A stretch of 64,000 nt of DNA from Anolis carolinensis (GCF_035594765.1 NC_085845.1:167354897-167418896); one strand, 5' to 3'; positions 32,174-49,894 are shown, counted from the first letter of the stretch. Translations and numbers: made by a program. Notes: generated from the letters alone by a model not told the origin.

Positions 32174-32180
32174 TATATAA
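32174..32180 (+). promoter_or_regulatory. TATA box of the osteocalcin-like gene
   Basis: TATATAA 100 nt upstream of the ATG at 32274, with no intervening ATG. Confidence 0.6.
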
Positions 32181-32273
32181 GTTGCTGTTGAAAGGCAAAC
32201 GCTCCTGAGAAACGTCCATATCTTCAGGACGAATTAGAGAGACACCAAAAGCATTTTCTAAGAACAGGAGAAG

Positions 32274-35200
32274 ATGGAGAACCTTTTGATGGTGCTGTTG
32301 TTTGCCATGGTCCTCCTGACAGCCCCCTGCTGTTGCGAAGCAGGTAAGTCTACTCCAGGTACAGGTAGGAGCAATCTCTGCCAGAGATTGTGAGTAACTA
32401 ATGCATTACCAGTGAAATGTAGTGTTACCTGCAGTGAATTGTTGTTGTTTTTTTTGGATAACAAAGTTGCAGCAAAGTTACACGTCAAAAGTAATATAAC
32501 AAGTGGGGACAAAGAATTCTATCGTTGTAACAAGCAATGATTTCTGGTGTTTAAACTTATGATTTAAAAACATCTGGAGGGTAATTTTGATAGGAATGTT
32601 CCAATTTTAATGTCATTTTTTCTATTGGTTTTCATTCCTTCTTTCAACAAGTGACAAAGACTAGATCTACACTGCCCTATATCCCAGGATCTGATCTCAG
32701 ACTATCAGTTTATCGCAGATTATCTGGCAGTGTCGACTCGGGCTGAATCTACATTGTGTTATTTCCTAGGATCTGATCCCAGATTATCTGTTTTGAACTG
32801 GATTATATGAGTATACACTGCCAGACAATCTGGGATAAGCAGATAAAATGGACTCAAATCCTGAAATATGGGGCAGCGTAGAAGGGGCGTAAGGCTGGAT
32901 CTATACTGCTCTATATCCCAGGATCTGATCCCAGATTATCTGATTATTTCAGGTTATCTGGCAGTGTAGACTCATATAATCCAGTTCAAAGAAGAGAATC
33001 TGGGATCAGATCCTGGAATATAGTGCAGTGTAAATCCAGCCTTCGTGAGAGAACAAAACCTTGTTTTATGAGGGGAGTGGGAAGGTGATTAGCAACTAGC
33101 TTTAAGCTCTTCCTATGCACCAAAGTATGGGATTCTTACCTCAGCCCATCACGTTTTATAGGTTTTATCTTGCCACTGTGGTAATAACATGACCTCCTCA
33201 CACATGGATGCTTTTAGGGGCAGGACAAATAGCATCACCCAGGTCCTATAATCTCTGCATAGCCATGGACAAAGTAGATTTAGTTTGTAGTTTAATGAGC
33301 AGAATCATGTTCATTTAACTCATTGTGAACTAGAATGCATAAAAGTTACTTTATGGAACTACAGTTTCCAAAATCCCATAGGCAGCAAAGAATATTCTGC
33401 TGGAATCCAAAAATAGGACATATAAAATTAATAATAATAATATAATAATATAAAACTTAATTTCTATTTTTTATTTTTTTTAATTATTTTAGAAATTATG
33501 ACAGACATTCATGAAAGTGAAAAACAAGAAGTAAAATAAAATACACACATATAAAAAAAGAAGAAAAATACAGAAAGATTTAAAGATTTGCACTGTAGTG
33601 TACAGCCAGTGCTTGTTAAACTAATGGATATTCACAGAACTTAATTTCTAGACCTCCCTCGCTCCCCAAAGGGACTCAGGGCAGTTAACATACATATAAA
33701 TGGCAAACATTCAATGCCACAATTTCTTCATTAATATCAAAAGTATAAAATGACAGTAACATACAAATTATAATAAAAATTCCACATTAGAAAAAAAACA
33801 ACAACATTTAAACATGACAGTCAGTAAAAACATTATTGCACAGAGCGAGCGTATACCTGGACCAATTTAAGTGACATCATCAACAACAATCTCGGAAACT
33901 TTTTATTCAGGCAAACTTTTAAAGAATAAGGCTTTTAAGATCATGTCATGGTATGCTGTAGTTTTAGCTCTGGATAAGTTTTAATTCATTTTTACGGATT
34001 TTATTTTAATATTTAATTTGATTTTAATGTTTGTATATTTGTGGATTTTAAATTGTATTGAAATGTTTTTAATGTAAGCTGCTTTGAGTCTCCTTGGTGC
34101 AGAGAAAAAGTATAAATAAATATCATCATAACAGAATAATAATTTAAGCCTGGCCACATTGTTGCGGCCAGGAGCCTGAATATGTACACTTAATCGGTGG
34201 TGTCTAACGTGTGGCTCTCCACGTGTTTTGGACTTCAGTTCCCAAAATTCCTGGCCATTGGAAAAGCTGGCTAGAGCTCCTGGGAGTATGAGGCCCAGGC
34301 ATCTGGAAGGTCGCAAGTTTGACACTTCTGCCCTATCTGTTCCAATTTGGCCAGTTCAATTTGGAACAGTTCTGCTTATTCCTCTAGTGTGCCGGGAACA
34401 AGTCCTCTTCTTCAAACAATCTTTGGGTAAGATAGAAACATGTCTTTACTTCCTCATTTTAAATTGAATTATGGGCAAAAATAGAAAATGCTGAATGAGC
34501 AAAAATGCCAACAAGGTTTAGCTAGTCCACTTTCTCTGATTAAATTTGACATTTGTGATAGATTGTTTATCCATTTTAAAAGCATCACTATACTCTTGAG
34601 TTTACGTCAGTGGTTTGCGAACCTCCTTCCTCTTTATTTAATTTATTTAATTTATTTTCTTTTCACTCCTTTCTGCAGACCACATTAGTTCTAGATTATT
34701 AAATGTGGTTTTCTGTGGACGAGCAGATGGCGGCTACTGGATGGCATATATTCTGTATCAGAAACTAGAGCTGATGTGGCAATTTTCTGAATCAGCAATT
34801 TTCTGAACCCCAAACAACCAAACCAAATCTAAAGTTGACCAAAAACTGAATTGTAACCCATTGAAGTGGTCCCTGGTCAAAGTGGTCCCTAATCAAGTGG
34901 GCCCTGGTGAAAGTGGGCCCTGGTCAAAAAAAGGTTGGGAACCACTGGTTTACATTCATGTTCTTGAAGTTCTTTTGGATTTTTTTCAAATAGGAAGAAT
35001 ACTGAAGAAAGCAGTATAGACTGCTGTATGTGGCAGATTGAACTGACTCACAGGGAAACCTGTGTGTGTCAAGAGACACCACAAGAAAGACAAATGTTTT
35101 CCTGGGTTCCTTTTGTCCCCATAGCTTTAGCTTTAAATTCTTCCCTAGAAGTCCATTATCAGCAATCGTTTTGCACCCCTGGCTTTACTGCACCATGTGG

Positions 35201-38200
35201 GGCATGTTCAGGAAACAGTTGAAAAAAGCAAATTAACACCGTGCTCAGGAGGGGAGAGGCATCCTTTGTGGGACAGCAGGTGTATCATGCTATCTTTTCT
35301 ATGTTTTTCAGATACAAACCGGGCCATCGATGAAGGTGAGTAACTGGTAAGAGGGTTCCTCCCCAAAACTTCCAAATTTTTCATTGTCTGGGACATCGTT
35401 TTTTAACTTTTACTTGCAAAGCTCCTAATTAACAACCTAATATACTATACATATATATCTCACTACTTTGTGTCATCATCACATATCCTCCAACTGCACT
35501 GTTTTGGTAAGAACCGTACCTTGAACTCTCTATCATCTTTCAGTTATGGCTTGGCTTTTCTCTTCCAAACTGCCAAGTTTGTTAGAAACCCATTACTTTT
35601 GCCTCTACTGAATCATCCTTGCCTCGCAAGTGGACAGCAATTATGATGAATAATATTGCTATTGAAGTTGATTTTTGGAATTTCCTAGAGTGCCAAATAA
35701 AATGGAGGAATTTTACAAGAAAGCTTGTGATTTCTGGCACTGCTTAAAGTAATTTTTGAAAAACAAACGTGTCTAGGTGTTTTAAGAGACCTGGCAGAAA
35801 TGCAATTTGAGAATCAGTCCCTCAGTGAATAAACCCCCTGTTAGCTGGACACCTGGCCCCTTTCTTCCCAGTTATTCTGGGAAAACTTTCCTGAGCCCCC
35901 ATGTTTGTGTGTTGTAGCAAGAATAACATCTTAAGGGCTAATAGATGTATTGCGGTATATGCTTTCATGGACCAGGGCCCAAATTTGTCAGATTCTATCT
36001 GATGAAGAGATGTCTGAAGGAAAGATGCATCAAGGTAAAGACTTCTCTACTTTTTAAATGAAGTTTGGCAGGAATTGCTAGGATAGGTACAATTTTGCCA
36101 CCCTGTAAGAACTGAAATGGGATTTTTCCTTTCCAAGATTTCTTCAGCATTTTTGTTAGCAAATATTCTCTAGCAGTTTCTCAATTATTCTCTGAATGAT
36201 GGGTGTGTGTAAGTGTTATCCCATAATCCCTGATTTTGACATTTGATATTTAAGAGGGGTCAAGTTGCAACATTTAATAGAGGACACACAGTAGTATGTA
36301 GATTGTGTGATTCCTGGATTAGGATCACTACAGTTATACAGCCAGTGGTGCTTGGCAGCAGAGCTTAGAAGAGTTACTCATTAGGACTGCAACTCCCAGT
36401 TATTCCACTGCCACAGTGCTGCTGATCATGCTGGATGTAGTTCTGGGATCTGTAGTCTAAAAGGAGTAATGTTTCCCAAGCTCTGCTGTATAGCAGCAAG
36501 ATCATAAAAAGCTCCAATATGCTGTAGATCAATGGTTCTCAACCTGTGGGTCCCCAGATGTTTTGGCCTTCAACTCCCAGAAATCCTAACAGCTGGTAAA
36601 CTGGCTGGGAGTTGTAGGCCAAAACACCTGGGGGCCCACAGGTTGAGCACCACTACTGCAGAGGGATATATCTATACTGTAGAATGAATACCGTTTCACA
36701 CCACTTTAACTGCCATAGCGATGGAATCATGGGAATTGAAGGTCTTTAGCCTTCTCTGCCAAATAGTGCTAGTGCCTCAATAAGCTACAACTCATTGGAG
36801 TCAATAGCATTGAACTATGGTGTCAAACTGTATTCATCCTACAGTATAGATCAGGCATGGGTAAACTTTGGCCCTATAGGTGTTTTGGACCTCAACTCCT
36901 ACCGGTTGTTAGGAAACTTGGGAGTTGTAGACCAAAACACCTGGAGAGCTGTAGTTTGTCCATGCCTGGTGTAGATGCACCTGAGGTAGAGTTGTGTTTA
37001 ACATCCTCTTAATCAGTTATTTCATAAATCCACTCACAGCATTTGTGAAAATACCTTATACCTTTTCAACCATTTAGTGCCTGCTCTGTAGGAGTTTTCA
37101 TATTCACATATTAAAACATTTGTGTGTACAACAGGGATCAAGATAAAGCGGGAAGTAGCCAGTGCCTTTGTGAGAAGGCAGAAGCGGTCATATCCATATT
37201 ATGAAAGGTAAGAGTTTAATGAGAATCAGCATAATGACTTGAATGTTGGACTAGTACTCTGGAATCTCTGTTTAGCCACTGAAATCCATTTGGTAACCCT
37301 GGGCAAGATATTCTTTCCCAGCTTAAGATGAAGCCAGTGAAACTGTCTATGAATACATATTTTTAAAAAACCTCTCGGATAGTACCACTATAAGTCAGAG
37401 TTAACCTGAAAAGGTGTAATAACAACAAAAAGTTAAATACGGCTATCTATTGTGACTAATTTGGAAAACAGGAGACTGGGTAGAAAGCTTTACAATGCCA
37501 ACATTTGTATTTACACAATTAAAAGAAAAAGAAACAGGAGACTGCAGAAGTACTGGAATCAAGAAGTCCTGCCCTGGGTTGCTGTGAGTTTTCCAGGGTC
37601 TATGGCCATGTTCCAGAAGCATTCTCTCCTGATGTTTCACCCACATCTATGGCAGGCATGCTCAGAGGTTGTGAGTCCTCATAGATGCCTGCTATAGATG
37701 TGGGCAAAACGTCGGGAGAGAATGGTTTTGGAACATGGCCATATAGCCCGGAAAACTCACAGCAACCCTGTGATTCTGGCCATGAAAACTTTCGACAAGT
37801 CACACCCTCCTTCAAGAACCCACAGATAACACAGATATCTAATTCAAACATTGTGACCCTTACAGGGATGTTTGGGAAATGAGGATATGCTGTGATATTC
37901 GATGCAGTTAATGTAACATTTCAGAAGATAATGACCCTGTTCAGATGTACATTGTCTCTACATAAGGATTAGCAGATGGCAAGGACTGGCTGTAGTAGGC
38001 ATTGCATGCCCCACATATTTGGGGGTGACAGGTGCTGTAAGAACTGTATTAAAAATGAGGGTTGCTTCTTTTCCCTCTCAGCCCTTGCCTAGCTTCCCCT
38101 AGTGATATCACCAGGACCTATCCTTTGAGTTTTGGCTTTGAAATCATAGGGAATGAGGTGGTGCCGATGTGGCAACCCTATCATTGCCAAGTGAAACAAA

Positions 38201-38616
38201 TGTTTTGCACAGAAATGTCTCAAAGAGCTGGCAGGTTCTCCGGTGTGGCTTTTTGTCACTGATGTCATCAAGGCAGGGCTTTCTGGGGCAAAAGGCCAGG
38301 CTTCTACTTAGGAAGGACAACCTACAAATTGGGCCCAGAGAGTTCACCACACTTGGAATAGAGTAACAAAGTCATGCATGTTCTCACCTACCAAGGGGTT
38401 GGGGTAGGCAAGCTGAGCACTGTTGTTTTAAAGTTTTAAATCACCTAACAGCAGCATTGCATCTTCTTACTCTCTCTGATCTCCAGGTACTATGAGAGGT
38501 TCAAGTCCCCCATGGAGATGAAGCAAGAGCAATGCGAAAACTATGCACCCTGTGACTACTATTCCGAAGTTGTGGGCTTTCATGCAGCCTACAGCCATTT
38601 CTTTGGACATGTCTAA
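32274..38616 (+). CDS. Osteocalcin-like (bone Gla protein 2 / OC3-type) prepropeptide, 98 aa; join(32274..32343,35312..35335,37135..37207,38487..38616)
   Basis: Manual splice (GT-AG, phases 1,1,2) gives MENLLMVLLFAMVLLTAPCCCEA-DTNRAIDE-GIKIKREVASAFVRRQKR|SYPYYERYYERFKSPMEMKQEQCENYAPCDYYSEVVGFHAAYSHFFGHV*. It shows a signal peptide, an AxxF propeptide, a furin site RQKR and a 49-aa mature peptide with E17/E21/E24, C23-C29 and an AYxxFFGxV end. The 24-nt exon 2 is the least certain. AATAAA at 38787-38792. Confidence 0.92.
32664..33041. mobile_element. Tandem cluster of Harbinger-type palindromic MITE units in intron 1 of the osteocalcin-like gene
   Basis: Three repeats of ATCTACACTG...GGATCTGATCCCAGATTATC and their complements. 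Confidence 0.7.
36852..36968. mobile_element. hAT MITE inserted in the TIR of a Harbinger-type MITE (about 36665-36982)
   Basis: TSD GTATAGAT/GTGTAGAT. Confidence 0.75.
37574..37797. mobile_element. Penelope-like remnant, inverted pLTR pair
   Basis: Same family, located in intron 3 of the osteocalcin-like gene. Confidence 0.8.
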
Positions 38617-39169
38617 AACTGGACTTTTTCTTCATGTACTTACCTGGCAGGGACACCTGCGGGGGCAAATCCAATTGGGGAAGGGGCAGGGGGAAGCAAG
38701 AGGTTGAGCAGGGGAAGGGAAATAGCAGGCTGGACGCCAGGCATTTGGCTAACATTTACACAACTGTTTCTCCCCATTTGCAAAAAAATAAAAAAATGTA
38801 GTACTTCTTTCTTCTAAGGAGGGTTTTTTTTTGCCCACAATTGGATAGTGGCTGCCTTGTTGGTAGAGAAATGAATCCACTCTAGGTTTTAGTACAAACT
38901 TTAAATACAAGGTATAGTGTCTGTTTTGGAGATGGGAGTGAGTACCTTGGATTACTCTGTTGAAATCTGGGTTAAAATTCCGAGTGGATTTGCTACTTTG
39001 TTGACATGGAAACTGCTGAGTTATTAACCCATGAGCCACAGCATTTGCTGGAGAGTCATTGCCATTCTGTGAGAAGAAGAGCAGGTAGGGTGGATCAGAT
39101 AGAACTGGGCCAAGCAACCACCAACCCTTTAATTGTTCTGAATGACAACTTTCATCAGTTTATATTTTA

Positions 39170-42060: not shown

Positions 42061-44414
42061 CCAGAAGGTAGAAGAGGCAACAAAGGGATCAGCAACTCTT
42101 GATCTAATCTTAACAAATGTGGAAGACCTGATCAATACAGTTGAAGTGGTTGGATCCTTAGGGGCAAGTGACCATGTGCTCCTGCAGTTTGCAATACAAA
42201 GGAATGCTGAAACTAAGACAAGTCAAACACGCTTTCTGGACTTTAAGAGAGCTGACTTCCAAAAAATGAAGGAATTACTGAGCGGCATTCCATGGACGCC
42301 GATATTAAAAAACAAGGGAGTTAAGGATGGATGGGAGTTTTTCAAAAGTGAAATACTCACGGCGCAAATGCAAACAGTGCCAACAAAGAAGAAAAATAAG
42401 ACAAGTGCAAAGAAGCCAGAATGGATGTCCAAAGAACTTCTAACTGAGCTAAAGCTCAAAAGTGACATGCACAAGAAGTGGAAAAGGGGAGAAATCACCA
42501 AAGAAGAATTCAAACGTATAGCCAACACCTGTAGGGAAAAGGTTCGCAAGGCTAAAGCGCAAAATGAGCTCAAGCTTGCCAGGGACATAAAAAACAACAA
42601 AAAAGGCTTTTTTGCTTACGTTGGTAGAAAAAGGAAGAAAAAGGAGGCGATAGGGCCATTGCAAGGAGAAGATGGGGTGATGGCGACAGGGGACAGGGAA
42701 AAGGCAGAACTGCTCAATACCTTCTTTGCCTCGGTCTTCTCAGAAAAAGAAAGCCATCTTCAACCTCAACAACACGGAATGGACGAAGGATTGGGGGAAA
42801 TCCAACCCCAAATAGGGAGACACGTTGTCCAGGAACACCTGGCCTCTCTAAACGAATTCAAGTCCCCAGGGCCAGATCAGCTACACCCAAGAGTACTGAA
42901 GGAACTAGCGGAAGTTATTTCAGAACCACTGGCAATTATCTTCGAGAGTTCTTGGAGAATGGGAGAAGTCCCAGCAGATTGGAGGAGGGCGAATGTGGTC
43001 CCTATCTTCAAGAAGGGAAAAAAGAACGACCCAAACAATTACCGTCCGGTCAGCCTCACATCAATACCAGGCAAAATTCTGGAAAAGATCATTAAGGAAG
43101 TGGTCTGCGAACACTTAGAAACAAATGCGGTCATTGCTAATAGTCAACACGGATTTACCAAAAACAAGTCATGCCAGACTAATCTGATCTCTTTTTTCGA
43201 TAGAGTTACGAGTTGGGTCGATACAGGGAATGCTGTGGATGTAGCGTACCTGGATTTCAGTAAGGCCTTCGACAAAGTCCCCCACGACCTTCTGGCAAAC
43301 AAACTAGTAAAATGTGGGCTAGACAAAACTACGGTTAGGTGGATCTGTAATTGGCTAAGCGAACGAACCCAAAGGGTGCTCACCAATGCGTCGTCTTCAT
43401 CATGGAAAGAAGTGACAAGTGGAGTGCCGCAGGGCTCCGTCCTGGGCCCGGTTCTGTTCAACATCTTTATTAACGACTTAGACGAAGGGTTAGAAGGCAC
43501 GATCATCAAGTTTGCAGACGACACAAAACTGGGAGGGATAGCTAACACTCCAGAAGACAGGAGCAGAATTCAAAACGATCTTGACAGACTAGAGAGATGG
43601 GCCAAAACTAACAAAATGAAGTTCAACAGGGACAAATGCAAGATACTTCACTTCGGCAGAAAAAATGGAAATCAAAGATATAGAATGGGGGACGCCTGGC
43701 TTGACAGCAGTGTGTGCGAAAAAGACCTTGGAGTCCTCGTGGACAACAAGTTAAACATGAGCCAACAATGTGATGCGGCTGCTAAAAAAGCCAATGGGAT
43801 TCTGGCCTGCATCAATAGGGGAATAGCGTCTAGATCCAGGGAAGTTATGCTCCCCCTCTATTCTGCCTTGGTCAGACCACACCTGGAATACTGTGTCCAA
43901 TTTTGGGCACCACAGTTGAAGGGAGATGTTGACAAACTGGAAAGCGTCCAGAGGAGGGCGACCAAAATGATTAAGGGTCTGGAGAACAAGCCCTATGAGG
44001 AGCGGCTTAAAGAGCTGGGCATGTTTAGCCTGCAGAAGAGAAGGCTGAGAGGAGACATGATAGCCATGTACAAATACGTGAAGGGAAGTCATAGGGAAGA
44101 GGGAGCAAGCTTGTTTTCTGCTGCCCTGCAGACTAGGACACGGAACAATGGCTTCAAACTACAGGAAAGGAGATTCCACTTGAACATCAGGAAGAACTTC
44201 CTCACTGTGAGAGCTGTTCGACAGTGGAACTCTCTCCCCGGGGCCGTGGTGGAGGCTCCTTCCTTGGAGGCTTTTAAGCAGAGGCTGGATGGCCATCTGT
44301 CGGGGGTGCTTTGAATGCGATTTCCTGCTTCTTAGCAGGGGGTTGGACTAGATGGCCCATGTGGTCTCTTCCAACTCTACTATTCTATGATTCTATGATT
44401 CTATGATTCTATGA
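42061..44414 (+). mobile_element. CR1 LINE, 5'-truncated, young
   Basis: Starts in the C-terminal part of the endonuclease ([19 protein letters not shown]...SDH), contains the full RT domain, and ends in the CR1 3' tail with tandem (ATTCTATG)n at about 44382-44414. Confidence 0.97.
42119..44314 (+). CDS. CR1 ORF2 remnant (reverse transcriptase), uninterrupted 731 codons
   Basis: Motifs [48 protein letters not shown]. No native start (GTG, 5' truncated), so probably not expressed. Confidence 0.9.
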
Positions 44415-44568: not shown

Positions 44569-45357
44569 TCACTGCAGCTTGTCAATGATCAATGTGACAT
44601 ATTCTTCTACCATCTTAAGAGTCTTTTGGAAACTTTCACAAACTGGCTTCAGTATATTAACAGTATCTTCCAGGCAATCCGTAGTCATTTCAATGGTATT
44701 TTTTGAAGAAGACTGTCCCCGAACAGCTAGTATCCGCACGAAACTGGTAAGTGAGAAAGTTGCGGTTCCTATAGACATGCTGCGAGCCCTTGAGTCTGTT
44801 GGCAGCAGTACACTGGATGTACTTGAGCTGACGTCTGGAAGTACTTTAGTAATCTCTTCATAAGTCATCAGAAGGTCACTCACTCGAAGAGACAGCACAG
44901 GAGTGCCTGATGAGTCCCGAATAGCAGCCTCGAGTTTTTCTAGGAGATTGCCCTGTTTCAATAAGATTATTGAAACAGGACCACAGATATTGTCATAAAC
45001 TCCTTTATACTGAACACTAATTTCCCTTAGAAGTTTAAGTTTGTCATCCGCAGAGGAGCTAGTAGTTTTGGTAATCTTGGAATACAAAGTATGGCCGATT
45101 TTCTCCTTGATCTCTTTATCTTTTGAGTCCACGAGTTCCTGCAACTCTCTCAAAGAACTCATCAGGAGCTGAAGATTCTCCTTGATGCTAAGGGTTTCCC
45201 TCACTATAATAATCGGGAATTCTGTTTTAAGGAACTGGTTGAACATTCGGAATAGAGTGTTAGTACAAGAGACAAACATGTAGACACAGTCATATAGACC
45301 GCGGCTAGCATTGACCAGTCTTGACTTTTCCTTCTCTGCACCAAAAAAGGACATCAT
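44569..45357 (-). CDS. C12orf60: C12orf60 orthologue, single coding exon, about 262 aa
   Basis: MMSFFGAEKEKSRLVNASR...NTLFRMFNQ...PVLSLRVSDL resembles mammalian C12orf60 as I recall it, and the position next to SMCO3/WBP11 is syntenic. The ORF track start at 45393 is a TTG immediately after a splice acceptor (ttctccag, AG at 45396-45395). First ATG is 45357. Minus-strand AATAAA at 44499-44504. Confidence 0.85.
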   Translation of the reverse strand: MMSFFGAEKEKSRLVNASRGLYDCVYMFVSCTNTLFRMFNQFLKTEFPIIIVRETLSIKENLQLLMSSLRELQELVDSKDKEIKEKIGHTLYSKITKTTSSSADDKLKLLREISVQYKGVYDNICGPVSIILLKQGNLLEKLEAAIRDSSGTPVLSLRVSDLLMTYEEITKVLPDVSSSTSSVLLPTDSRARSMSIGTATFSLTSFVRILAVRGQSSSKNTIEMTTDCLEDTVNILKPVCESFQKTLKMVEEYVTLIIDKLQ

Positions 45358-47110
45358 TTTCAAAAAATGTGGATGTGTCCCACGAAAATACAAACTGGAG
45401 AATGCTCAGTGGAAGAACATCAATCAAATGGTTGTCTCAGCCATATATCTTCGGCAATCCCATCAGCAGCGCTTTAAAACCAGAGTGAGGTAAACCTATT
45501 ATATGATGAATAAAACAATAAAAAATTCTAAATATTTAGCTCTACATTTTCCTATGTTATACTTACTGAAAATACACATAATTAAAAAGTTAACTGTATA
45601 AATGACAGTTATTGAGAGCACAAAGTTGGAAAGGCTATTCTGCACTAATTTGCCACTGCCCATATTATTGTCCTGATTTCAGCTAAACACTGGCAGGCTT
45701 TCTACTAGCAGTCATAAATAACTATTTATCTTTGTCATTGGAATCAGTTGAGGTTGCACAAATTATCATGTCTGTGCCTCGATACTGTATGAGGTCCAAA
45801 GATGATGAGATGCCTTGCTCTCCCCTAGGAGACTCCATAGACTCCAGTATGAAGTGCTAAGGGCCAGGTTCACTGGTCTGCCAACTATTGCTTTCCCTAA
45901 ACCAAAACAACCAGTTTAGCTACAGTACCTAAATCTTTGGAAACTTCCAGATTACACTACTATAATGCACTCTACATGTGGATGTTCTTGTAGATAAAAT
46001 AAGAATAATTGTATTTCTTACACGCCTCCCTTTGTGGCTCGAGGCGGGTTACAAGACAGCTTAAAACACAGAATAATCTCAAACATTCTAGAAAATACAC
46101 ATATTAAAACATATTTCTACAAAATACATATTAAAATACACTGAACAAAGATTAAACACAAGACGTATGTTTAAAATTTGTGATTAAAACTGGCTGGGTA
46201 GGCCTGTCGGTAGGGATATGTTTTAGATGCTATGGAAACAGCAGTAGAATTGCTGACTAGAGTACCATATACAAACCATATTACCAGTTTTAAAGGAATT
46301 GCCCTGGCTACCAATGTGTATATGTATGTGTATGTGACTTCAAAGCTACCTGTGTATGATGACCCCAAGGCAAGGAATACTCAGAAGTCGTTTTTCCAGT
46401 TCTTAGGTTCTTGACTATCAACACACTTATCTAAATTCAAGGTACTAGTGATGACATTTAGAGTCTTAATTGACTTGGGACCCTGATGCTTGGAAGAGCA
46501 TTTCTACTATGTATACCTGTCCAAAGACTAAGACAAAGGTCCACACTTTGCCCACCTCTGCCTTAAAAGTTGTTTCCTTGCTCAACAATGAAGATCCCAT
46601 TAGAAATGCATTTTTAGCTGGAACACCATGCCTAAAACACTTTAATGTTCCACGCAGTGACAAAATGTGCACATTTTTATAGGTAGACAACTGGCCATGA
46701 GAACTTTTGCTTAATTGGCAGTATTTTTGTTTTGGTATATTCAGAAAGAAACATGAACATTACGTCAGCGGTTGAAAAAAAAGCTGCATATATTTGGAGC
46801 CAGGTTCTACGAGCTTCTGTCCACTAAAAGAGAGCTTAGTGAAAGGCACAATGACTATGGCCTTGTGATCTGTAATGCTAAGCTAAGCAAGTCCAAGCAA
46901 GCATCAGTACAAGAGGACATCGACATGATGCCTAACTCCTGCAATCAACAGACAGAAGACCAAAAAAGGGATGTTTGGAGGAGCACTGAAATGAATTGTG
47001 ACAAACTCTAATGTAAGAGTGCTTTCATTACTAAATTGTTTTATGTGACAAGGAACAGTGTGGTTGGAAATAACAAGGAAGTGATAATCTAGATTTGGAT
47101 ATTTACTGAT

Positions 47111-49210: not shown

Positions 49211-49894
49211 ATGAAGCTAAGTGACCTCCTCTACCCAAGTAATCCAAAAAGACGCCAGGATGTGATTGTCCTGCACCAGGAACTCCTTGATCTTATGAAA
49301 CTTAATTTTAAAGTTACCAATGAATTGATTCGAACAATGAAGGAACATCTTGGAGCCAAGATTACAAACATTACAATGAAAGAGAATGGTACCATCAAAG
49401 AGAACTGTGACATTATCATTCAAGCCATGAAGTCTATTCAACAAGAAGTACAGAAGCTTGATAAAGAAATTAAGGAGAGACTAGAGCCAGGAATGTACCA
49501 AAAGCTTTATGATATCAAACAACCTGAGTTGGAGAAAATTGCAATAGCTTATCGAATTCTCTCTGCTATACTTGGAGAGGCTAGTGCTTCTGCAGGTACA
49601 GTAGGCATAAAATTAATATGCTCAAATATTGTAATCGTTACAGTTAATAAGTTGGTTGCTCTGCTTGCTCAAATTGGGATATCGGTCCTTGGAGGCATTG
49701 CCATTACTGTCTTTGCTTTGGGAATTGATGTGATTCTTCATGCCATCCTAGGGGCGGTAGAAAGAGATCAACTTCTAGCATCTATCCAAAGTTATGAGGA
49801 GCATCTAACTGAATTTAGGGAAGCCTCTGAGACATATCACTGTGCCATCAATGAAATAAGTGCAGCGGTGAGGGGCAATGCTGACCTAATGTGA
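49211..49894 (+). CDS. SMCO3: Single-pass membrane and coiled-coil domain protein 3, 227 aa, single coding exon
   Basis: SDLLYPSNPKRR, GTIKENCDIIIQA, LEPGMYQKL, ILGEA, ILGAVE and SYEEHL.EF motifs match SMCO3, with a hydrophobic segment near the C-terminus. Acceptor tttgcag at 49184 just upstream of the ATG. Confidence 0.95.
   Translation: MKLSDLLYPSNPKRRQDVIVLHQELLDLMKLNFKVTNELIRTMKEHLGAKITNITMKENGTIKENCDIIIQAMKSIQQEVQKLDKEIKERLEPGMYQKLYDIKQPELEKIAIAYRILSAILGEASASAGTVGIKLICSNIVIVTVNKLVALLAQIGISVLGGIAITVFALGIDVILHAILGAVERDQLLASIQSYEEHLTEFREASETYHCAINEISAAVRGNADLM

Follow-up and report, generated by a model that had tools for sequence, protein, structure and literature searches.

A stretch of 64,000 nucleotides from Anolis carolinensis (GCF_035594765.1 NC_085845.1:167354897-167418896), referred to here as the window, carries on its plus strand the gene for matrix Gla protein (MGP) and, downstream of it, a second four-exon gene (32274-38616) predicted to encode another protein of the γ-carboxyglutamate (Gla) family. 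An initial annotation, made from the sequence alone, described this second gene as an intermediate between osteocalcin and MGP, which raises the question of whether it is the canonical osteocalcin (Bgp1, encoded by BGLAP), a copy of MGP, a relic, or a lineage of its own. Our analysis points with high probability to the Anolis orthologue of Bgp2, also called OC3, a gene that sauropsids and amphibians still have but mammals have lost. The name OC3 reportedly comes from Cancela et al. in 2014, for an osteocalcin-like protein. Bgp2 has been equated with this OC3 and is always found in the Mgp locus (Leurs et al. 2021, PMC8006282); databases often leave it without annotation or label it ‘Mgp-like’, and no description of its expression was found by the same authors. 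Earlier work has thus already covered this class of gene, the link with MGP and the scenario of a tandem duplication. What is new here is evidence that the lizard makes spliced mRNA, an estimate of how strong purifying selection is, and an apparent, complementary decay of the docking motif for the carboxylase in the two osteocalcin paralogues.

The coding sequence of Bgp2 (297 nucleotides, nt; 98 codons and a stop) is divided over four plus-strand exons, with ag|..|gt borders throughout and intron phases 1, 1 and 2. The coding part of exon 1 (32274-32343) specifies the predicted signal peptide MENLLMVLLFAMVLLTAPCCCEA and ends in a phase 1 donor, and exon 2 (35312-35335), only 24 nt long and running from phase 1 to phase 1, adds the propeptide piece (D)TNRAIDE. 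Exon 3 (37135-37207) encodes the docking region IKIKREVASAFV, the furin site RRQKR and the first mature residues, its product reading as the segment IKIKREVASAFVRRQKR followed by SYPYYE. The coding part of exon 4 (38487-38616) supplies the 42-residue Gla domain with its ExxxExC motif, C23, C29 and a terminal FFGHV before the stop. This distribution, with the signal peptide in exon 1, the docking site in exon 3 and the Gla domain in exon 4, is the four-exon layout of Mgp and Bgp genes. A cut after RRQKR would leave a mature peptide of 49 amino acids (aa) with Glu at positions 6, 10, 17, 21 and 24 and Cys at 23 and 29. The four exons and their phases, the RQKR cleavage motif, the 49-residue peptide, E17, E21 and E24 and the C23/C29 pair had all been proposed in the initial annotation, and the exon translations bear them out.

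Logan contigs from four runs of the same organism (X2, X3, X7 and X8), belonging to four independent studies, were aligned on positions 35200-38850. Contigs of all four runs span the joint 37207|38487, and those of three (X2, X3 and X7) also span 35335|37135, in each case with GT..AG borders and at exactly the predicted bases. Exon 1 is reached by an X2 contig whose overhang before 35309 reads ..CCTGACAGCCCCCTGCTGTTGCGAAG, the 3' end of that exon; in the same contig a poly(A) run starts just after 38796, ~11-16 nt past an AATAAA signal at 38787-38792. Because the contigs are spliced and polyadenylated, the runs are RNA; their contig depth is an unreliable guide to expression level. Bgp2 is therefore transcribed, spliced as predicted and polyadenylated in this lizard, and the spliced transcripts on which the initial annotation had made its gene model depend are found in four studies.

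The 3' end defined by the X2 contig corresponds to a short 3' untranslated region (UTR; 38617-38803, plus strand), that closes with polyadenylation around 38803. Transcripts in X3, X7 and X8 carry on through this proximal site to beyond 38850, in X3 for at least another ~1.6 kb; these point to a far longer second 3' UTR or to read-through. At the other end of the gene, a candidate TATA box, TATATAAG, can be read at 32174-32181 (plus strand), ~95 nt upstream of the ATG. The X8 contig that is joined to exon 4 begins 58 nt inside intron 2 (37077-37134), without the exon 2-3 joint; it could represent an unspliced precursor, an alternative start or a break in the contig. Two SINE-like (short interspersed nuclear element) repeats in the introns (36420-36663 and 37518-37883) collect very large summed contig depths in each of the four RNA runs, presumably from the many other copies of the repeat in transcripts rather than as a property of Bgp2.

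Transcription by itself is compatible with a functionless relic heading for loss, as happened in mammals. The gene has been lost both there and in ray-finned fishes (PMC8006282), the crocodile copy has a divergent C-terminus and a long branch, and the Phe contact with the carboxylase at propeptide position -16 is gone. Selection speaks otherwise. In the agamid Phrynocephalus forsythii (locus L001) the exon borders of Bgp2 are identical to those in the window, and over the in-frame codons of exons 3 and 4 the comparison yields 0.069 nonsynonymous (dN) and 0.77 synonymous (dS) changes per site, a dN/dS of 0.09 held between lizard lineages that parted roughly 150 My ago or earlier. No splice site is damaged and the frame stays open throughout; the Gla, Cys and Asp residues do not vary, and all four studies contain spliced polyadenylated mRNA. 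Bgp2 is intact and under strong purifying selection, and decay toward loss is very unlikely.

The same constraint is visible across a wider set of proteins. A protein word search retrieved full-length orthologues of the same architecture from squamates and turtles, 63-92% identical to the Anolis protein. E17, E21, C23, E24, C29 and D30 are invariant among 16 squamate and turtle Bgp2 sequences together with exon 4 of the window MGP; E17, E21, C23 and C29 remain so over a 41-protein family alignment, and the furin motif is present in every Bgp2 tabulated. The window gene was compared exon by exon, and its A. sagrei orthologue (P0012) served as a full-length proxy in alignment and folding; the two differ at 6 of 98 residues, for example Arg in the window for Met at mature position 11. 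Orthologues carry inconsistent database names (‘matrix Gla protein-like’, ‘osteocalcin-like’, ‘osteocalcin’). The earlier statement that the gene is invisible to the open reading frame (ORF) track holds for a bacterial-style track; it does not hold for NCBI, where gene models exist in A. sagrei and many reptiles.

To which family member does this conserved gene belong? Proximity favors MGP. The Bgp2 ATG lies 11,911 nt beyond the MGP stop, on the same strand and with MGP upstream, and both genes share the intron phases 1, 1 and 2 and the exon 3 end TATGAAAG|gta, so that the tandem arrangement at ~12 kb, the common phases and the common exon end reported at the outset all stand. The identity of 22 in 43 residues to MGP counted by hand is likewise reproduced, as YE (two residues), an Arg from a split codon (one) and 19 residues in exon 4. 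By BLASTP, exon 4 matches the window MGP at 19 of 38 residues (50%, E 3e-13); in a tblastn search of the whole window it matches only Bgp2 itself and MGP exon 4, and with only these two places hit the resemblance is not due to chance. Searched with phmmer against PDB sequences, exon 4 hits human MGP (3.6e-5) and osteocalcin (4.8e-5) at almost the same level, which fits the impression of an intermediate. Pfam scans of the translated exons and of full-length orthologues produced no match, a blank without weight because the copy scanned evidently lacks PF25890 (BGLAP_C), the model that databases cite for this family.

Since the conflicting database names left the family open, a profile search of a representative library was run; it returned 95 family members, thirty of which were named by cluster look-up. 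A maximum-likelihood tree (54 rows, 100 columns, LG+C20 by posterior mean site frequencies) places the window exon 4 inside a 20-row Bgp2 clade (99/95), where A. sagrei P0012 is its closest neighbor; the clade also takes in sequences from birds, turtles, a crocodile, a frog and a caecilian. Mgp is split from all Bgp rows, the window gene included, at 98/84, and two shark and chimaera sequences, taken as chondrichthyan Bgp, fall on the Bgp side of this split. The Bgp2 stem measures ~0.24 changes per column vs 0.53 for Bgp1. This topology contradicts the idea of a recent, lizard-specific tandem duplicate of MGP that converged on osteocalcin-like processing. Such a duplicate would account for the 11.9 kb distance, the common strand and identical phases, for an exon 4 closer to the window MGP (50%) than to Anolis osteocalcin (42%), and for the ‘matrix Gla protein-like’ label that NCBI gives to many orthologues. 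It would not be expected to have orthologues of the same architecture in turtles, birds, a crocodile, a frog, a caecilian and probably a lungfish, nor to share the N-terminal pattern YYER...KxP...CExYxPCD with shark Bgp, and we regard it as extremely improbable.

The opposite proposal is that the gene is the only osteocalcin of the species, a canonical BGLAP that stayed at the MGP locus or came back to it. An osteocalcin-like mature peptide of 49 residues behind a furin site, the E17/E21/E24 triad, the C23-C29 pair and the name ‘osteocalcin’ given to orthologues in some databases would all suit it. In the tree, however, the Bgp1 clade (100/99) excludes the window gene. A word search with python osteocalcin found a separate canonical osteocalcin, with a ELNPSCDELADQVGFQEAY-type signature, in both A. 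carolinensis (P0195) and A. sagrei (P0169), and the propeptides differ as well (K-16/A-10/F-7 in the window gene vs F-16/S-10/V-7). About eight other squamates, including Candoia, Rhineura, Varanus, Tiliqua, Hemicordylus, Gekko and Podarcis, possess both genes, on contigs of different size. A sole osteocalcin is thus hardly credible, and the initial annotation was right on both counts: the gene is distinct from BGLAP by tree and by the two Anolis proteins, and it belongs to the known MGP-linked OC3/Bgp2 class by tree, synteny and literature (PMC8006282). In the history that best suits this placement, Bgp2 would have stayed beside MGP while the canonical osteocalcin moved elsewhere.

Relative to other Bgp2/OC3 members, the window gene shows no difference of kind: it shares their clade (99/95), the position beside Mgp, the four-exon layout, the furin site and the ~49-aa mature peptide, and the signature SYPYYERYYE..KSP..E...E.CENYAPCDY is common to it and to turtle and squamate members. 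With canonical osteocalcin it has in common the signal peptide, the propeptide with RxKR cleavage, the ~49-aa mature peptide, Gla positions 17/21/24, C23-C29, D30, a predicted three-helix fold and the ...F(F/Y)GxV C-terminus. It differs from it in clade and locus, in the Tyr-rich N-terminus with E6 and E10, and in having CENYAPCDYYSE where osteocalcin has CELNPDCDELAD; exon 4 is 42% identical to Anolis Bgp1 over 33 BLASTP-aligned residues, and the Phe-16 and AFVS motif of Bgp1 are absent. Shared with MGP, besides the phases, exon 3 end and exon 4 identity given above, are an ANxF-type half-site (A-10, F-7) and a CE(D/N)Y.PCD core. MGP retains its docking region in the mature protein, whereas the furin site of Bgp2 would remove it, and Bgp2 has neither the ESHESxES exon of MGP with its N-terminal SxE phosphoserine motif, nor its basic C-terminal tail, nor Phe-16; exon 2 encodes (D)TNRAIDE instead and the protein ends in FFGHV.

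Two members of the tree deserve a separate remark. A lungfish protein (P0026, Protopterus annectens ‘osteocalcin’) falls just outside Bgp2 (94/62), with an A-10/F-7 propeptide and a YVERYYEQFKTP N-terminus, and lungfish MGP, encoded on the same contig, has a nearby accession number; Bgp2 is listed only for lissamphibians and sauropsids by Leurs et al. (2021, PMC8006282). The crocodile Bgp2 (P0029, Crocodylus porosus ‘matrix Gla protein-like’) ends in the divergent sequence PCRYHSRQMRYRFDYRHYSEEY on a branch of 1.09, and this copy may be degenerating or mis-modelled.

How, then, does a Bgp acquire the appearance of an MGP? At the N-terminus of the mature peptide, the Tyr-rich segment of Bgp2 aligns with QERIRER of MGP, and E6 and E10 fall opposite human MGP Glu37 and Glu41, which are published Gla positions of that protein; the claim that both sit at the extra Gla sites of MGP is therefore sound, with the qualification that the window MGP has Gly at the second. 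Tyrosine sulfation of the Tyr-rich segment was considered; the flanks of the segment are rich in Arg. A Tyr-rich N-terminus with Glu 6 and 10 also occurs in lungfish and shark Bgp (YYERLREQ and YYERHREY), and features common to these lineages are ancestral characters in a slowly evolving gene rather than evidence of a hybrid origin. The description as an intermediate thus survives in part. The MGP-like features are real; the position on the Bgp side of the split, the short stem and the shark-like N-terminus identify a slowly evolving Bgp. Judging from the alignments, the MGP-like residues of Bgp2 are ancestral Bgp/Mgp characters that Bgp1 has lost. A further apparent resemblance, in how far the docking Phe stands from the first Cys (an MGP-like 30 residues in Bgp2 vs ~40 in Bgp1), was dropped when the Phe residues compared proved to be non-homologous.

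The docking site offers a second view of this divergence. Pro-regions align colinearly in Mgp, Bgp1 and Bgp2, with positions counted from the cleavage site or its MGP equivalent. MGP has F at -16, A at -10, F at -7 and I/M at -6; shark Bgp has F, A, V and V/M at the same positions. Bgp1 has F at -16, S or G at -10 (A in 2 of 20), and mostly V at both -7 and -6, and amniote Bgp2 has K at -16 (between two I/V), A at -10, F at -7 and V/M at -6. Phe occupies -16 in all 20 tabulated Bgp1 propeptides vs Lys in the window Bgp2. Structural work on the carboxylase defined F-16, A-10 and L-6 (L/V/I-6) as the conserved propeptide contacts; F(-16)A impairs carboxylation of factor IX, and the weak binding of the osteocalcin propeptide was attributed to Gly at -10, for which osteocalcin compensates through a second exosite in the mature peptide (PMC12647623). 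The window Bgp2 keeps two of these three contacts, A-10 and V-6, with Lys in place of F-16. Bgp2 thus appears to have kept the MGP-type ANxF half of the site and lost Phe-16, and Bgp1 to have done the opposite. Bgp2 may in this way couple the high-affinity A-10 contact of MGP to an osteocalcin-type cleavage.

A maturation pathway can be proposed from these features. The 98-aa precursor would enter the secretory pathway through its signal peptide, and γ-glutamyl carboxylase would dock on the propeptide via A-10, F-7 and V-6, with Lys rather than Phe at -16. Conversion to Gla would follow at E17, E21 and E24, perhaps also at E6 and E10, and a furin-type convertase would then cleave after RRQKR. 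The released 49-aa peptide, with three helices and a C23-C29 disulfide, would by analogy bind calcium and hydroxyapatite as osteocalcin does. Accompanying this proposal, the AlphaFold model of A. sagrei P0012 contains three helices, with a predicted local distance difference test score (pLDDT) >90 over residues 60-98. Its best Foldseek matches are the crystal structures of porcine, fish and bovine osteocalcin (1q8h, 1vzm and 4mzz), with target template-modeling (TM) scores of 0.7-0.9 and root-mean-square deviations of 0.7-2.6 Å; so short a domain yields weak E-values.

As to where such a peptide would act, two chicken data sets offer incidental entries in transcriptome tables: OC3 co-varies with aggrecan, epiphycan and chondroadherin in trachea (PMC11802539), and with MGP, CHAD and MFAP5 in brain punches (PMC12208832). 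This co-variation tentatively places the action of Bgp2 in cartilage or connective tissue instead of osteoblasts. The five Gla residues and the distinct mineral-regulating role put forward in the initial annotation are, at this stage, an inference. A broader scenario can be sketched, tentatively and with more doubt than confidence: after the duplication that gave rise to Bgp1 and Bgp2, the ancestral bipartite docking site (F-16 plus A-10/F-7, the MGP arrangement) may have decayed in complementary halves, Bgp1 keeping F-16 and Bgp2 A-10/F-7, so that the carboxylase recognizes the two osteocalcins differently. On this view Bgp2 may carry as many as five Gla residues and act in cartilage or connective tissue, in a role that mammals lost.

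Several points weigh against the picture of an expressed, carboxylated Bgp2 orthologue. The tree has 100 columns only, and the window row fills 42% of them. For the genus, the evidence of a separate canonical BGLAP comes from database proteins of Anolis species. The Phe-16 contact is replaced by Lys both in the window Bgp2 and in all amniote Bgp2 tabulated, which makes the efficiency of carboxylation uncertain; cleavage, carboxylation and mineral binding are all read from the sequence. The tissues of the RNA runs are given in coded form.

Placing the gene in Bgp2 adds no new gene class. It concerns a conserved vertebrate Gla protein without a published functional or expression study, and one that mammals lack, so that one member of a family of three has escaped the mineralisation research done in mouse and human. 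Anolis lends itself to experiment: its genome can be edited, and the cartilage of its regrowing tail calcifies. An intact, expressed and strongly constrained Bgp2 in this lizard is a usable entry point.

The neighborhood of the gene agrees with the Mgp locus. The MGP gene itself (plus strand; exons 13791-13851, 15702-15737, 19548-19629 and 20224-20362; phases 1, 1 and 2) encodes 105 aa, and in the tree its exon 4 falls among tetrapod MGP sequences (98/87). At 20231-20233 it has a Gly codon (GGC), giving IRGR where other tetrapod MGPs have Glu (IRER), at the Gla41 position; with Gly in place of this Glu, the MGP of this lizard may carry one Gla fewer. Downstream of Bgp2, a single-exon gene of the DUF4533 (C12orf60/SMCO3) family (44572-45393, minus strand; Pfam PF15047, E 1e-31) provides a synteny marker, so that the order MGP - Bgp2 - DUF4533 places the gene within the Mgp locus. 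In Phrynocephalus a DUF4533-family gene lies downstream of Bgp2 on the minus strand (L001:21626-22405), matching the window in place and direction. ART4 was not seen in the window between Bgp2 and the DUF4533 genes. A second single-exon DUF4533 paralogue (49211-49894, plus strand) points away from the first. Between Bgp2 and the DUF4533 genes lies a copy of a long interspersed nuclear element (LINE; 42119-44314, plus strand) with an unbroken 731-aa ORF that matches the reverse-transcriptase domain RVT_1 (E 3.5e-35).

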